Assembly (NCBI GenBank): GCA_023515725.1
Contig: JALDTO010000179.1
Location: 198,039-262,038 of the forward strand
DNA length: 64,000 nt
Source of the DNA: Amoeboaphelidium protococcarum X5
Taxonomy: Eukaryota; Fungi; Aphelidiomycota
Direction: 5' to 3'
Part shown: piece after piece, positions 46,651 through 55,359 of the stretch
How the letters are laid out: each line of letters starts with the position of its first letter
Position numbering within the stretch: the first letter of the stretch is position 1
Made by a program: the position numbers and the translations under genes
Notes under the pieces: model-generated
Databases searched by the model: none
The model's input: the letters and a program-made list of their open reading frames with translations, nothing else
What the model was told of the DNA's origin: nothing

Positions 46651-47046
46651 ATACCTCTTGTAAAAGTTGACATTAAATTCTAGCGTGATTATTTCTTTAT
46701 TTTTGAGGTCTTCCTCTCTCCTTTAAGGTTTGTGACGATTTTCGGAGAATATACAGTGCGTGAGTGACGGGAGTGATGAAAACGCATAGCCAACCTGTGA
46801 GAGCCCCTGCCAAGCGAAAAACGAATTGACGCACGCTCGGAAATTAAATTTGATCAGCTGCAAAGAACAACGACAAACGCCCAGCCAGCCAAGAAGAGAT
46901 CAGCGAGAAACGAAGGCAACCAAAGTTTGATCAGTAATATTTCTATTCCTCATCTACCTTCAGTTTAATAATAACTGTTGATTATATTATTGCTTCTCTT
47001 ATCCTTTCAATATATCGTTTAAGATCATTTTTTTTGGATTGAAGAG

Positions 47047-50011
47047 ATGAATAATAGACGTTAGTACCTCAACTAGTAAGAATTTCCCTTCTACATATTG
47101 ACTTATCCGAGTGACTCTTTCCTCTAAGTTTTGTGTGTGTAGAAGTAATGAGAATCTTGTTGGTTCATCTAATGGATCTCCTCCGCCATCTAGGCGATAA
47201 TACTATTAGTAGTAGTTACTCAATGGCAGTGGCAATAGTAGTCAAGAGTCGATCCCGATGAGTTAGCGCTAGTATAGTGACGAGAGATTATACAGGAGTA
47301 ATTAGTCAAGTAGTGATTAGCTGCCAGCGCCGCCCCCTGCGATTATGGCTTATTAGCAGCCAGGCAGAGACCGTTCCAACAGTAATCGATCCCGCCCGTC
47401 TGATTTGGATGATCATGGTCGTCGTAGCCCAGGTGTTGCTAGGCCTCGTAGATAGGATCACACTGCAATGTAGGTGGATGAATATGGTTTCTAGTAATAG
47501 TAATAAGTGCCGTAGAATGTTAGTAGGAAGCCACTTACTTACTAGCATATGAATAGCGACTATGGCAACAATGGGTACATGTCTGATCAGAGTAGTGATG
47601 TTAGATCTAGAGATTAATCCACCAACTCTGTAATTGTTCGTAAGAAAACTGTGCGGAAGATTGAGCTGTTCAGAGGAAATCTGGTGTTGAATTGTCCGAT
47701 TCCAGATGCTTTACTCAATTTCATTAATGTAAAGTAGGAAGAGGAGTTTAACGTGATGCGTTACTCAGCGGTGACTTGTAACATACCGGACTCGTTTATG
47801 GCGCAGAACTATACTCTTCGTCCGCATCTGTATGGTCGTGAGACTGTAATGTTTGTATGTTTGACGCTGTACAATGAAGGGCCAGAGTTGGTCAGTAGAT
47901 CAATCAGTTCACTGATTAAGAATATCTAGTATCTGTGCGCTCGTGATAGAAGCCGCACGTGGGGACCAGAAGGATGGAAGAAAGTGGTGCTGTGTATTGT
48001 AGCTGATGGGCGTAATAAGATACACAAGGAGACTTTGAAGCTGCTTGGTCTTATGGGCCTTTATTAGGAGGGAATCATGAAGGATCACGTTATGGTACCT
48101 CAGAATTATCCGTCTATGCAGGACAAGTACAAGACTTCTTCTAGCCATCACTCCTCGCATGAGAATACAGGCAAAGTCTCGGCTCACGTGTTCGAGTATA
48201 CTTGCCAGGTGACTGTCGATGAACTGGGTCGTGTGAAGAAGAGTGGTGTGCCTGTGTAGATGATGTTCGTCCTGAAGGAGGAGAATAAGAAGAAGCTGAA
48301 TAGTCATCGCTGGTTTTTTAATGCATTCTGCCCCATTTTTAATCCAGAGGTTTGTGTCCTGATTGATGCTGGAACTAAGCCATCCACTAGTTCATTGTAT
48401 CATTTGTGGAAATCATTTGAGACTGATCCTAATCTGGGTGGTGCTTGTGGTGAAATTAAGGCGGAGTTGGGTAAGGGATGTGTGAAAGTGTTCAATCCTT
48501 TGGTAGGTGCGTAAAACTTTGAGTATAAAATGAGCAATATTTTGGATAAGCCGTTGGAATCTGTGTTTGGTTACATCTCGGTGCTGCCTGGAGCATTTAG
48601 TGCCTATCGTTACTCGGCTCTACTGAATGATATGCCTGGTCATGGACCGCTCGCATCTTACTTTGAAGGTGAAAAGCTGCATGATGGTTCGGCGAACATT
48701 TTCAAGGCTAACATGTACTTGGCCGAGGATCGTGTTTTATGCTTTGAGCTGGTGGCCAAGGCCAGGTGCGCTTGGAAGCTCAAGTATGTCAAGAGTGCTT
48801 CTGCCACCACTGATGTGCCTGAGGGTATTCCAGAGTTTATATCGCAACGTCGTAGATGGTTGAATGGGTCGCTGTTTGCAATGTTTTACTCTATTGGGCA
48901 TTGGTTCAAGATTTGGAATACGGGGCACTCTTTCGCGCAGAAATTGCTCTTTCAGTTGCAGATGCTTTATAATATCATTAATGTGATCTTCACTTGGTTT
49001 GGTATATCTCTTTTCTACCTCACATTCTTCTACTTGTCCTAGAATGTGATTAATGGTAATGATCCCTTCGTAATTAATGGTTAGAGATTCGGTGATTATG
49101 TATTTCAAATTGTGCGGTAGATTTATATTGCCACCATCATTATGATTGTGATTGCGTCCCTTGGTAATCGGCCGCAGGGTAGTCGTGGTATATATGCATT
49201 CACTATCGTTTTATTTGCGTTCATTATGGCGCTGATGATCTTTCTTCTCGGGTGGACTATTGGTAAGGCTATTGATTAGACTTTCCAGTAGATTACCGCG
49301 CAGAATCCTAATTTGAATGGCGCGCAGGCATTTAGTCAAGCTCTGGTCACTTCGGCAACGTTTAGAGACATATTTATTACTGTGGTTGCGAGCTATGGCT
49401 TGTATCTGATTATATCGCTCTTGCATGGTGATCCGTGGCACATGTTTACATCATTCATATAGTACACGTTCCTGTCGCCGACTTTCATTAATGTTCTGCC
49501 TATCTACGCGTTTTGTAACATTTCAGACGTGTCTTGGGGAACCAAGGGTGATAATAAGCCCGCCAAACTGGGTAGTGCCAACATGTCCAAGACTGGCGAT
49601 GATGGCAAAGGTGGCCAGTCGGTGGATGTTGAGTTGCCGTTTGAAAACATTGCTGATAAGGGAGCCCTCAATTCTGTCTATGACCAGTGGCTACGGCATT
49701 TTGAGTAGAAGGCCAGGATGGGCGATGTGCCTGAAGAAGAACCCAAGCGTGATGTTGCAACAAAGCTTGAGGATTGGTATAAGACGTTCAGGACCAGAAT
49801 TGTGCTGGCTTGGCTCTTTTCTAATGCGCTCTTAATTGCCGTGCTGACCAATGAACAGCTATCAGTTAAACTTGGTGGCACCAATGCTGATTCTAATCCA
49901 TTCCTGGCTGTCATGTTCTGGTCCTTTTTAGGCCTGACAGCGATACGTTTTATTGGAAGTTGCATCTATCTGATAAAGTATGCTCAGGAACGTGCTTGCA
50001 GATGCTGCTGA
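47047..50011 (+). CDS. CHS: Chitin synthase, division 1 (class I-III type); first exon tentative, alternative start 47258
   Basis: [64 protein letters not shown] and SWGTKG. Confidence 0.97.
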
Positions 50012-50145
50012 ATGGTTTTATTACCTAATCATCTGCGAAAATTTATAATAAAACTGATATTTCTTTTAAAATTAATTATTACTTATTATATCTCACTCTT
50101 TTCATTAGTATTCAAACCGCTAGTAATCCAGCGACTTAACTGTTA

Positions 50146-51413
50146 TCACTGCTGACCATACGGCTACTATTAGTATTGGGGCATCCCACCATCGATGGAC
50201 GCATAGTTAGTCGGCCTTCTACCAGCACCACCACTCTGAGGCATTGACGGCGGACTGACCATATTCATATTCCCATACATGGCTGGCGGTGGTGGTGGTG
50301 GACGCTGCGGATCATATCCATAAGGATAAGGAGGCGGGCGCATTTAATATCTCGGTCCTTATGGTGCAAACTAGGGAGGATAAGACTGCGGCGGAGGAAC
50401 CATATACGGATTGGGAGGCATTCCATAAGCATACGGATCATACATTTACGGAGCGGGTGGGCGCATACCATAAGGCTACTACTGATGGGACGACTACTAC
50501 TACTGATGATGATGGTCTCTACCACGACCGCCGCCACTAGAATATGGACGATAATGAGGACGTTCACGGCGCTTAGTTGCAATGCCACGATACTGGCCAG
50601 GAGTAGGAGATCTCGCACGATTACGACGAGCCTTCTACACAATAATCTTACTACCATTCAACTCATATCCATTCAAAGCTTCCAGAGCAGCCTCAGCCTG
50701 ACTAACAGTCTCCATCGCAATAAATCCAAAGCCGCGAGATTCTCTAGTATTGGGATCTTTCACAATCTTGCAATCTTGCACCTACATATTGAGATGATAT
50801 ATGAGTGATCATGTACACAGTTCAATATATATATATATATATATAATCTTACAATTCCGTAGCGAGAGAAAGCCTCTTCCATATCCTCCTCCTTCGTGTC
50901 CTTGCTCATATGAGTGACAAACAGATTATTACCAGGATTACTACACTCAATGTTTAGATTGTATATATATAACAGGCGACATCAAAACAACTATCTTACT
51001 TTTCATGTCTATCATCAGAGCGATGAGAACTACCACCACCATCACCACCACGGCCGTCATCTCTATCTCCAGCACTTTGATTGCCACCGTCTGATTCATC
51101 GCCACCAGTATTGTACTACTTCTTCAAAGGACTGCGCGATCTATTCTATTTCGCTGCCGCAGCCGGTGCATGCTCACTATCGCTGTCATCCCTGCGGTTG
51201 TTCTGAGGTGAGCGGGATCTGTCGCGGTCATCTCTGCTCTCTGCACGGTGTTAATTATAATACTGCTCAGACGTGGTCGCATTGTGTACGCATAGTCTGT
51301 ATACACAATTAGTTGCCGTCGTCGTCGCTGCACTATGGCTGTGAATTATAATTATTATTGTCTGTAGAGATGATGATGTAAATACCGTCGATATTACTGC
51401 CGTTGTCTGACAT
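50146..51413 (-). CDS. Tra2/SR45a-like RRM splicing regulator; introns 50782-50852 and 50941-50999, 5' exon structure tentative
   Basis: RSRSP repeats, NPGNNLFV (RNP2), ESRGFGFI (RNP1), RARSPTPGQY and a Pro/Tyr-rich tail. Confidence 0.8.
50825..50845. repeat. (AT)10 microsatellite inside an intron
   Basis: Directly visible. Confidence 0.9.
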
Positions 51414-51773
51414 ATTTTGTCCACTAATAGTACTGTCTGAGTGATTATCGCTCGTTCCGTGTGTTGTTTGCGCTGAAAGAAGGAAACGGACAACAATTGG
51501 GAATTGTTTGACTTGGCGCTTTCGAAATTATCTCTTCGTCTCTTCTTTTACTTACTCTGATGCAGAAGGGTGATTGTAAGTGGTTCATCCACTTGGCTTT
51601 GTCAATTAGGTATTTAACTTAATAGAGAAACATATTTTGGATCAATTAATAATGGATGTAGTAAACCATTTCTGTCTACTTCTAACTATCATTGCAAAGA
51701 TTCTCATGGGGGGCATTAGAATGTTTGAAGAAATGCATTGGCAACTATATAAAGGGTCTGCGTCTAGATCTGA

Positions 51774-53257
51774 ATTTAACAATGTCATTCCCAGACTGAT
51801 AGGGATGCATTAGCAAGTTCGCATTGGTGGATTATTGAGAAATAGTTTAGGCTGTACATATGGTTCTTTTTTTTTGAAAAGGAGTGTAAACAAAGAGTTC
51901 TGGAAGAGCTGTAGATTGCAAGGTGTCGTCTCATCATGGGACGGGTTGTACCTGAAGATTTAGTAAGTTTTACACTGACTTGTACTCTGTATCCGTCCCT
52001 TGTCATGCAAAGTCTAAAGAGGATGCTAGTGGCTAGTAGATTGCACCACAGCCAGCCTAAAGCAGCAGTTCTACAAGTTAAGCAAGAGAGCCGGCCCTTG
52101 CCCCTGGGATAGAAATTCACGGCACGTAGGCTGACGAACCGGAAGACTTGGTGACATTCGAGCTACCGCCTGGTAAGAGGAGACTTAGAAGTGATACCTC
52201 TTCCAACTCATAGAAAAGGTAAAGAAAGTCTCTGCAGTAGATGTATCGTCAAGAAGATGATTGTCCAGGTGACCCAACTGATCAGGAATTCACAGAAGGC
52301 TAATAAGAATTGGTAATTCCTTTGGGAGATGATTGGCTTTGGGAAGAGGATGATCAAAATGAGATATCCGATTAACTTGAGGACTTACTCGACGAGGTTC
52401 CTGATAATGAGGAGGAGATAGATGATGCTGCAGAACAGGAATAAGGAAGGGATTACAGGTGGCTCAATAATCCAGCACTTCCTTAGATTGATATATCTGA
52501 TTCTGATGTGACTTTCGTGGGAGTGGATCTTGGAGTGGCGTTCATGGCGACTAGCTGCATAATCAAGGCTTCACCTGGGAATGATGCACTGCAAGTTCTG
52601 CAATCTTCTGACAAGAACGCAATCCCGTTTGTCATGCTGAATTCGGAAGAATTTAGAGCTAGAATCAGGGCAAAACTGAGCTAGTAGGACAGAGAGCTAT
52701 CAGAGGATGTATTTGCGCAGCCAAAGTATTGCTTCAGTCTGGAGATGTGCAAGCGTAAATCTGCCAATGCAACTGTAGTCACTAATGAACGAATGCCCCA
52801 ATATCTGGATCTCTCCGTTCAGAGGGCCAAGTATACTAAATATCTTATTAGGAGAGATGTTTTGAGAGAGTATGCTGCGAGACTGGTTGGTCTCAATTCG
52901 TTTGACGACAGCAGAAAGAAGTAGATTGTGGTGTTTTGGGGAAGTTCAGGGATATAGAAATTAGGACGTGTCTTTCTCCCAGGTGGTAGATATCATCCAG
53001 CTTGCAAGCAGTTGCTGTAATATGTTGTTCAGCAGATTGCAACTGTATACGTTAGCCATTAGAAAGGTACATCTAATCATTGCAGTGACTGTGAATAGAG
53101 GGTCGCTAGAAGATGGACTGCAGAGCGAGATGTTGTTACTTGCGGAAACTGCCATTTGGTGATAAATAGAGATGTGAATGCTGCTATCAACATCATTAAA
53201 ATCGGACTCATTATGGCTACTAACCATGGTATGTTTTCGATTTAGTTCACGCTATGA
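51774..53257 (+). mobile_element. Fanzor1-like (TnpB-family) RuvC protein; N-terminus disrupted, open frame 51956-53257, predicted nuclease-dead
   Basis: FYTDLYSVSV, RuvC-I FVGVDLG (D 52526), IVVFWG, QKGTSNHCSDC..CGNC zinc finger and RuvC-III INRDVNAAINI (D 53171). Confidence 0.85.
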
Positions 53258-53451
53258 AACTTGAAGTTCAATATACTTTCATTTCATAACATCCCGGCCT
53301 TCTCTCTCAACCTACGCGGTACTTTATTATAGCATCATTTTATTCCAAAGGTTTCGAGCAAACGTGTTTCAACTGCCAGATCATCGCGGTTTTTGATCGC
53401 GACACGTCAGATACTCTCTACTTTATCAGTAAAGTTGACGATAATTTTCAC

Positions 53452-53874
53452 GGGACTTGAGGTTCTTTAGGCCAGCCGGTCAAGCAGTTGTTACCGTCGA
53501 TTAACTTCTCGTGAGTTGTTTGTACGAGTCGCTGTGAGACCCACCGGCGTTAGAGAATGTTTCGTTGCATCGTGAAGCCGAAGATTTCCAGTGTCTGAGA
53601 GGAAAAGTTTTAAATCCGATCACGAACTGGTAAAATCGTCAAAGGCCTAACGGTGTAAAGGCTCAAGTCTGACACTCCCTAACGGGTGGTAAGGACCGTT
53701 TATGTCTGTTGCAACGAACTATATGCGGCAGATCCAGGTTCAGTGATGTTCATTGCTTGCTGTTCGTGCATTCTGATGAATATAAAGCGTCATTCCCCGG
53801 CCTTCGGGCCAAACCCGGTGTCATTGCGGGCTTTCTAGTGGCCACTTAAGTGTGGTAAGCTCGACGCCCTTTTT
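53452..53874 (+). ncRNA. Unidentified highly structured RNA-like element (about 420 nt) ending in T5
   Basis: Many complementary segments including a long-range closing helix, a C(UUCG)G tetraloop hairpin, a possible pseudoknot and a terminal oligo-T. Confidence 0.6.
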
Positions 53875-54154
53875 AAAGTTCTTTGACGGACATTAAAAGT
53901 TTCCGCTGATAATTGGCTTTATAATTGGCAGGCCACGACTTCTGAAACAAAATTTAGCTGTTAATAGCATGGCTACATATACTCTAAGCACATTCTAGCA
54001 TACTGCAAAATTTGAAATCTGGAATTTCTACCCAAAAATCTTCTACGTTCTTTGAAACCTGCAGAGTTAGCCACGCCACCAATCGTTCGATTGAGCCAGT
54101 AAAAAGTTTGTTAAAGATCGTTCACGACAATGACTTTTGACGATTTTTCCTATG

Positions 54155-54247
54155 ACTCCTGTAGCTCAATTTGGTTAGAGCGTCGTGCTTATAAATTCGT
54201 TAGATTTGGTCACGCGAAGGTCGGCAGTTCGATCCTGCCCGGGAGCA
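54155..54247 (+). tRNA. tRNA-Ile(UAU) with an 18-nt canonical intron (54194-54211)
   Basis: Cloverleaf with A and B boxes (TAGCTCAATTTGG, GTTCGATCC), anticodon TAT at 54190-92, intron after position 37 and T5 terminator at 54252-56. A1:C72 mismatch. Confidence 0.92.
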
Positions 54248-54449
54248 TAAGTTTTTGTCACTCCATTCTCTGCATAATCTTTGTATCCACATACTAAACA
54301 TCATCCTACCCCTAAAATATCACCTTATTTTGGTCAAGACTATCTATTTGTATACCTCAGGTAATGTAACAGAGAAATCGTAGTAACAAACTTAGTAAGC
54401 ATCATTGGTGTAATGAAGGTAACTCAAAAATCAAAGTTCAAACTAATAA

Positions 54450-55359
54450 TCATTAAAACACCAAATATAAAAACCCATCAGGACAGTGAAGATGCACATA
54501 TAGCCATACCAAAGTAGTCTCAAACGGAACATTGACACCGGCACATTTGCATTCACAATCATCACCAACACGATTAAACAGACGAGACCCAACGATGTCT
54601 TGCACCGTGACAAAGGCAGAATCTTGTACAACTGGCAACAAGAACATTATGACATCATCTGAACCTGAGGTGTATATTCGCACTGGGATATGTTTCAATT
54701 ATTTGTTGCATTCAGACAGAGGTTACTCAAAATCCAAACTGCACAAGTCGATAATCTCTCTGAAAGCCGTCTGATACTTTTTTAGATCCTCCAACTGCAC
54801 AGCTTCCCATAGTTGAGAATGATGAGTTGTTGACATTTTTGACCATTTATGAACATTTCCCGTGGCAATCAATACAGATTGCTTTAATAACGAATAAAAC
54901 ACCTCAGACTCTGTCCATTTATAAATTTCAAGCTTTTCAGATGATAGTTCAATGTCAATAGGCCACAATGCTTGAGAGGAATGTGTATCAGCCTTCGTCG
55001 CTAACCGGTCACGCAATACACCGATTGGGACATGTAAAGGCAACTTATTATTACCACCACCGTTTGAAGACGCGTCAGAAAACATAATCCACTAGTCAGC
55101 AATGTCAACTTTGCAGTCATACAGCTACTTCCTCATTTGATTAACGATCCACTTTAGGCAAGTTCCATACTTGACATTCATCTACATTCAATAAGCATAC
55201 TTTTATACAGTGGAAACCAAAAATTAAACTTACGTAAAATGTAACATTCTAAAAAGAAAATTTTATTGGCACAATAATGTTCCATAGCAAATTATTCCAC
55301 AGTGGAGATTGCACATTTACAGACTAACTCAATGCAGCATCACCTCCATGCTCAGACAT
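54450..55359 (-). CDS. ATG5: Autophagy protein 5; intron 55182-55233
   Basis: LWNIIVP, LPLHVPIGVL, HSQLWEAV, IPVRIY and GVNVPFETTLVWLY..PDGFLYLV. Confidence 0.85.

Follow-up and report, generated by a model that had tools for sequence, protein, structure and literature searches.

Three described systems come closest to the locus analysed here. In Fanzor1 proteins (PMC3627910; PMC10432273; PMC10530073), the canonical RuvC-II position holds a Gly or a Pro and a compensating Glu lies about 45 residues downstream (PMC10530073); the mutation E467A of this compensating residue abolishes cleavage (PMC10530073). The Fanzor signature places this alternative Glu six residues before the zinc finger ("ExxxxxxCxxC"), which itself has the form CxxC-x(12-18)-CxxC-x(4-8)-D (PMC10711439). 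TnpB2 or "pro-Fanzor" proteins (PMC10530073, PMC10711439) are prokaryotic proteins of about 400 aa linked to IS200/605 or IS607 elements. The third system, the TldRs, keep an N-terminal RNA- and DNA-binding fold while losing C-terminal RuvC and zinc-finger parts, and are characterized by inactivating changes conserved within a clade, by new, non-transposon gene partners, and by guides that match promoters (Wiegand et al., 10.1101/2023.11.30.569447).

The locus under study lies in a 64-kb stretch of DNA (64,000 nucleotides, hereafter the window) of Amoeboaphelidium protococcarum, on contig C179 of a 23.6-Mb assembly annotated with MIR68_ locus tags. The copies compared were that of the window, three others of the same genome (C235, C158 and C244), and two loci (L058 and L059) of a second A. 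protococcarum strain, MP228 (MP228_ tags; GCA_023515745.1). With Fanzor1, the family represented by these copies shares (i) a location in the nuclear genome of a eukaryote and a large full-length product (748 aa), (ii) the RuvC-I Asp, the Gly at the old RuvC-II site, the RuvC-III Asp, and a Glu ahead of the CxxC..CxxC, (iii) a TNB/zinc-ribbon Pfam match, an NLS-like motif and multiple copies per genome, and (iv) a candidate structured 3' non-coding RNA reaching the element boundary. It departs from Fanzor1 in that the window copy comprises the C-terminal 58% only and has Gln for the alternative Glu, in that the family reads DLG, DVG or DPG at RuvC-I where DPG is near-universal, in the spacing between the RuvC-I Asp and the Glu (177 residues here, 120-160 in the pattern as published), in the location of the NLS-like motif in an internal linker, and in a distribution that our protein-set searches found to be confined to A. 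protococcarum. With TnpB2 the family has in common the D...G(old site)...E-x6-CxxC...CxxC...D arrangement, and differs in not being prokaryotic, in size and in not being tied to IS200/605 or IS607. The likeness to TldRs consists in a TnpB-family origin, a lost catalytic residue and an adjacent guide-like RNA; unlike them, the window copy keeps the nuclease half and has lost the N-terminal half, and its mutation is private. Of the traits that set TldRs apart, none of those examined was found at this locus. A literature search found no paper naming both Fanzor and A. protococcarum.

Each full-length HSP70 match in the genome carries 4-18 in-frame TAG or TAA codons, and among the full-length matches to HSP70 and tubulin these two codons are present in frame, while TGA is almost absent. 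Two HSP70 paralogs have TAG or TAA at invariant Gln positions, as in IANDqGNRTTP, NDAQRqATKDAG and RGVPqIEVTF (q, TAR). Because the HSP70 TAR codons sit on such positions, the code of A. protococcarum, as judged from sequence, is one in which TAA and TAG specify Gln and TGA is the stop, which upholds the reading of TAG as Gln adopted in the original prediction.

Under this code, a 433-codon frame runs from TGA to TGA on the forward strand (51956-53257), includes 21 in-frame TAR codons, and corresponds to residues 316-748 of the 748-aa family Fanzor protein, that is, to the linker, the RuvC and the zinc ribbon. All the motifs previously described in this frame were located. The RuvC-I Asp (52526-52528) stands in VGVDLG, where C235 reads DPG and both C158 and C244 read DVG. 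A Gly (52940-52942, IVVFWG) takes the place of the ancestral RuvC-II Glu; the TAG is 40 residues further on, in agreement with the Fanzor rearrangement given in PMC10530073. The TAG itself (53060-53062) was correctly assigned to the position of the alternative catalytic Glu: its spacing to the first CxxC is six residues, as in PMC10711439, and KGTSNH and CSDC follow. The zinc ribbon (53081-53152) consists of CSDC (53081-53092), 16 residues and CGNC (53141-53152), and the RuvC-III Asp (53171-53173, NRDVNAAINI) comes six residues after CGNC. Both catalytic Asp residues are present, in a D-x-G context for RuvC-I and a D-x-N-A-A context for RuvC-III. From the TAG to the RuvC-III Asp, the arrangement agrees with the published Fanzor signature except for the Gln in place of Glu; the other two of the three catalytic residues are unaltered.

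When the frame is read through, the Cas12f1-like TNB family of Pfam (PF07282; gathering cut-off, 26.3 bits) matches a region that includes the zinc ribbon with 44.4 bits; the score is 28.5 bits for the stop-free piece 53099-53242 and 37.4 bits for P0001, the annotated ortholog in MP228. Pfam searches of the RuvC-I and middle pieces gave no match. The match above the cut-off, together with the motif architecture, supports the proposed Fanzor/TnpB identity. Comparison with structures, which had been recommended alongside the profile search, was weak: searches of solved structures with a 48-aa piece, with P0001 and with alignment A2 gave TNB matches only (E 0.1-1.5), to chains of TnpB, Cas12f, TranC and Fanzor2, and neither sequence nor profile searches could detect similarity to solved Fanzors beyond the TNB domain. 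AlphaFold2 models had a pLDDT of 34 from the single sequence and of 44 from a 7-row alignment, values too low for the Glu to be located in an active site, and the best Foldseek match of the better model (AsCas12f; E 2e-3, TM 0.14) was below significance. Matches to gp120 from the profile search of solved structures were rejected as spurious. Among 1.84 billion representative proteins, the 108-aa RuvC-I piece retrieved seven relatives, including P0001; beyond A. protococcarum, no named match was found either among these representatives or in a set of 5.8 billion proteins, which left no material for a deeper alignment.

The basic clusters and the acidic tract that had been noted upstream of RuvC-I are indeed present, yet they do not form an insert of the window copy, as had been thought, and belong to a linker common to the family. 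A bipartite NLS-like motif (KR, 11 residues, KRQRK; 52175-52228) is followed by a low-complexity tract (52307-52441); the pattern of the former recurs in C235, C158 and C244, and the latter is acidic and poorly conserved in all four copies. Residues 1-171 of P0001 were modelled with a pLDDT below 50. The linker, with its NLS-like motif and acidic tract, is a disordered trait of the family, and the motif may mediate nuclear import.

The search of the genome at the DNA level recovered the three other copies, 90% (C235) and 68-69% (C244 and C158) identical to that of the window. The coding sequence of all three reaches about 1 kb further upstream than the window copy. C244 encodes a 748-aa protein in a single frame, save for a short frameshifted stretch with a TGA; when this protein was compared with the window by tblastn, the match (E 4e-148) comprised residues 316-748 only, and no homolog of residues 1-315 was detected anywhere in the 64 kb. 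The 5' part of the gene, previously described as frameshifted, is instead missing: nucleotide homology to the family begins at about 51957, and some 315 residues are absent. From TnpB/Fanzor architecture, these would be expected to make up the WED/REC lobe, in which guide RNA and heteroduplex are held. Every sister copy is damaged as well. C235 carries two frameshifts, -1 and +1, separated by about 690 nt, each of which is also found in independent Logan contigs; C158 has one frameshift and one TGA; and C244, besides its short frameshifted stretch, has a cut RNA. The public gene model of C235, P0008 (MIR68_009819), bridges the two frameshifts by skipping a segment and reading some 40 residues out of frame. 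Between C244 (466900-470000) and C158 (418237-425250), identity is 89% in the upstream part and the 5' end of the ORF, 68-78% in its middle, and at least 94% at its 3' end and in the RNA, a mosaic suggestive of gene conversion among the elements.

Between the host flank and the truncated ORF lies a 352-nt segment (51604-51955) that has no counterpart in the full-length copies and matches only itself in the genome; it is found in MP228 with 97.4% (L058) and 90.9% (L059) identity. At its end, the TGA that had been reported (51953-51955) closes the frame upstream, and it is private to the window: both MP228 loci have G at 51955 and read TGG. The original prediction had also proposed a 50-nt intron (51963-52012) that would join an upstream ATG in frame. 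Arithmetically it does so, but its removal would delete FYTDLYSVSVP, a motif conserved in all copies. Splicing found no support either: a contig of run X9 (51869-52028) spans the site unspliced, the MP228 gene model has a single exon, and a search of contigs for the spliced joint reported none.

The window copy is rearranged in addition to being truncated. The C235 contig holds a divergent counterpart of the window region (flanks 87.5-90.4% identical; host-gene dS 0.22-0.37), in which the flanks are collinear with those of the window in one orientation and the element lies in the other, the fragment having been inverted. There, the right end of the element adjoins the flank that in the window meets the truncated 5' end, and the tRNA gene stands on the opposite side of the element. 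In the source sample, one contig links 51603 to 53877, the two lying on opposite strands, with a depth of 88.9, compared with 92.7 for the window form. As the two depths are about the same, both arrangements are real. No convincing inverted or direct repeats were found at the breakpoints of the rearrangement. Past the right end of the window fragment come 276 nt for which no other homologous stretch was detected in the genome.

The truncated and inverted arrangement is shared with strain MP228. L058, the locus of P0001, is collinear with window positions 46951-54546 (96.4% identity), and L059 is 94% identical and likewise truncated and inverted. P0001 is a 438-aa protein with a single-exon gene model, an ATG and the Glu; the ATG with which the L058 frame opens is equivalent to 51941, where the window has ACG. 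Conserved motifs of L058 also show radical substitutions found in that locus alone (CHLVIN to CHLEIN, KIGL to KIVL, SDCE to SDCV), and L059 has lost its C-terminal end through replacement of the 3' part. The locus is syntenic, beside host genes, in the two strains; the public annotation of the window genome has no gene model of comparable length (241-766 aa) at this place. A segment of about 1.9 kb, present in C235 (149479-151424) and MP228 (L058:7598-9533) and bounded by a duplication of some 97 nt of window 54450-54546, is absent from the window.

Downstream of the ORF, a candidate structured RNA (53366-53877, forward strand) extends to the right end of the element, where it terminates in a T-run. 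From the stop to this end (53258-53877), identity is 95% between the window and C235, and 85-89% between the window and C158 or C244, the ORFs of these two reaching only 68-69%. The predicted fold of 53366-53877 contains 140 pairs; most changes are compatible with pairing and two are compensatory. The 3' boundary is identical in three flank contexts. At least one copy is found without an ORF (C90:10031-10424), the source reads cover the RNA at several times the depth of the ORF, and contigs identical to it occur in a freshwater metatranscriptome. Rfam, applied to 51000-55000, found a tRNA only and no family for the RNA of about 510 nt, which is most simply read as the omega-RNA-like element of the family and as the best-preserved part of the locus. 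Further coordinates of this RNA are L002:2892-3400, L004:3145-3655 and L003:985-1411 (reverse strand). The tRNA gene flanking the element (54155-54247, forward strand; RF00005, 48 bits) was missed by ARAGORN, probably owing to its intron. An upstream motif common to the RNA and the tRNA was recovered in the window, but at the corresponding place C158 and C244 have other sequence, and the motif was set aside. For the 20 nt past the right end of the element, no second genome site was found at up to 2 mismatches; the single match with 3 mismatches equalled the control, in what is a weak test since these 20 nt may not be the guide.

Sequencing runs were compared as assembled contigs, in which starts, ends and strand are unreadable, and the kind of run X9 is not on record. 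X9 covers 51869-53549 and the tRNA side and not the intergenic DNA; this coverage looks like that of RNA, though it is no proof, and the relic may be transcribed.

At codon 53060, C235, C158, C244, L058 and L059 all have GAG, and the window alone has TAG. The change is one of 11 private to the window branch, when polarised by C235 and L059. HEKG(T/S)S is found in all annotated relatives that cover the site, with the exception of P0005, and the equivalent Glu is present at 32 of 32 further zinc-ribbon loci inspected, drawn from at least four other Fanzor families of the genome, copies broken by stops and frameshifts included. An assembly or sequencing error at this codon can practically be dismissed: an independent X9 contig of 638 nt (52658-53291) is identical to the window, TAG included, and as X9 differs from the window at 52186, the TAG allele is present in more than one data set. 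The differences of run X6 from the window match those of L058, and its codon 53060 would be expected to be that of L058 too. The single-step origin from GAG, a G>T change, had been rightly foreseen, and on these alignments the change is derived and private to the window lineage. Because TAG is read as Gln, it is missense and not nonsense, and the frame stays open.

These observations bear directly on the more ambitious of the two interpretations first offered, in which the locus would be a domesticated, nuclease-dead, RNA-guided regulator similar to TldRs, the E>Q protein and the adjacent RNA repressing a target without cutting it. Such a role would be in keeping with 433 open codons, with a substitution at the very residue whose loss abolishes cleavage, with a well conserved structured RNA adjoining the ORF, with a position fixed beside host genes in two strains, and with the possible transcription in X9. 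Against it, the Gln, far from being fixed among orthologs and paralogs, is absent from all of them, C235 and both MP228 loci included; the approximately 315 missing N-terminal residues are the reverse of the domain loss in TldRs; the window has ACG where the other strain has its start, and a private TGA upstream; the sequence past the right end has no second genomic match; and a single catalytic residue out of three is altered. We regard a regulator of this kind as very improbable. The other interpretation, a decaying element, is supported by a copy that is 5'-truncated and rearranged, lacks the MP228 start codon, and has a private TGA as well as the private GAG>TAG. The locus is, with high probability, an ordinary relic, a fixed piece of a Fanzor1-like transposon gene in decay.

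A separate question is whether the truncated ORF itself was retained by the host as a gene that is, or was until recently, functional and needs no guide RNA, the window allele being an inactivated or variant form. Its favourable side includes the syntenic locus in two strains and the MP228 allele, with its ATG, its annotation as a single-exon gene of 438 aa and its Glu. It includes, above all, the substitution pattern. Between the window and L058 (dS 0.07, dN 0.02, dN/dS 0.29-0.31), there are 20 synonymous changes where 11.9 were expected from a neutral simulation with the observed transition bias (P = 0.005), the counts by codon position are 9/11/22, with an excess at third positions (P = 0.03), and there are no indels in 1302 nt, the truncation being common to both. 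This pattern points to some protein-level constraint after the truncation, real but modest. Among the three truncated copies, dN/dS is about 0.3-0.45.

The same range of dN/dS, however, was obtained in every comparison, including those with frameshifted copies. Between the window and C235 (dS 0.22, dN 0.07, omega 0.33), 23N:15S changes fall on the branch of the window and 17N:13S on that of C235, so that the frameshifted C235 branch has the same ratio as the window. Since visibly frameshifted copies give the same values, dN/dS does not separate function from decay; the ratio below 1 that had been set as a mark of function was found, at 0.3-0.45, and is equally low for broken copies. The window's own branch (6N:5S private changes, P = 0.17) is indistinguishable from neutral. 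An open frame is equally uninformative because TGA is the sole stop, and 58% of neutral simulations with 42 changes remained free of TGA.

Divergence between the two strains is also mosaic. Over 53503-54247, a tract covering the RNA core, the 276-nt unique spacer and the tRNA, the window and L058 have no differences in 745 nt, as opposed to 7-10% in nearby non-coding sequence, a pattern suggestive of gene conversion or recombination in the recent past. At 8 of the 10 sites that could not be polarised, the pattern is discordant, suggesting gene conversion with the full-length type. The mosaic divergence, the discordant sites and the like ratio on the broken C235 branch weaken the signal of constraint between the window and L058. 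With the radical changes of L058 in conserved motifs, the lost C-terminal end of L059, and the lack of a comparable gene model in the window genome, they make a host-retained ORF unlikely. A wider form of this explanation, in which the truncated Fanzor module and its RNA were together retained beside the tRNA under weak purifying selection in at least two strains, the window allele being transcribed and dead through E>Q, we consider unlikely as well.

On the decaying-relic reading, the history of the locus is as follows. The full-length family protein consists of an N-terminal half, a disordered linker with the NLS-like motif, the RuvC and the zinc ribbon, and the RNA of about 510 nt comes after it at the right end. 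Of all this, the window locus has kept just 433 C-terminal codons and the RNA, which lie, by comparison with C235, in inverted orientation between the flanks. After the truncation the window lineage alone gained TGG>TGA upstream and GAG>TAG at the alternative Glu. The reading of TAG as Gln would keep the frame open, giving it the appearance of a designed E>Q "dead" allele. Judged from TnpB and Fanzor architecture, the product would be inactive whatever the residue at 53060, because it is without the N-terminal half for guide-RNA and target binding. The downstream RNA, the only part that looks constrained, may act in trans or move as an RNA-only derivative.

The genome of A. protococcarum contains at least five Fanzor families. 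One other family has five intact, TGA-bounded copies of 729-730 aa (L026, L027, L028, L029 and L037, with the Glu in PEYRTSQRCSNC), located at C154:219328, C212:54312, C13:151607, C205:403629 and C264:1904590, and is probably still active in the genome. A further family has frames of 896-1165 aa (L038, L039 and L042-L044; e.g. C179:89867-90052).

Taken singly, the window locus is one more dead transposon gene and matters little. In recoded genomes, a G>T or A>T change at GAG or AAG codons yields Gln and not a stop, and relics stay open; when such genomes are scanned, a long open frame or an "E>Q" should not count as function. The RNA of the window family, which is far better conserved than the protein gene, merits attention of its own.
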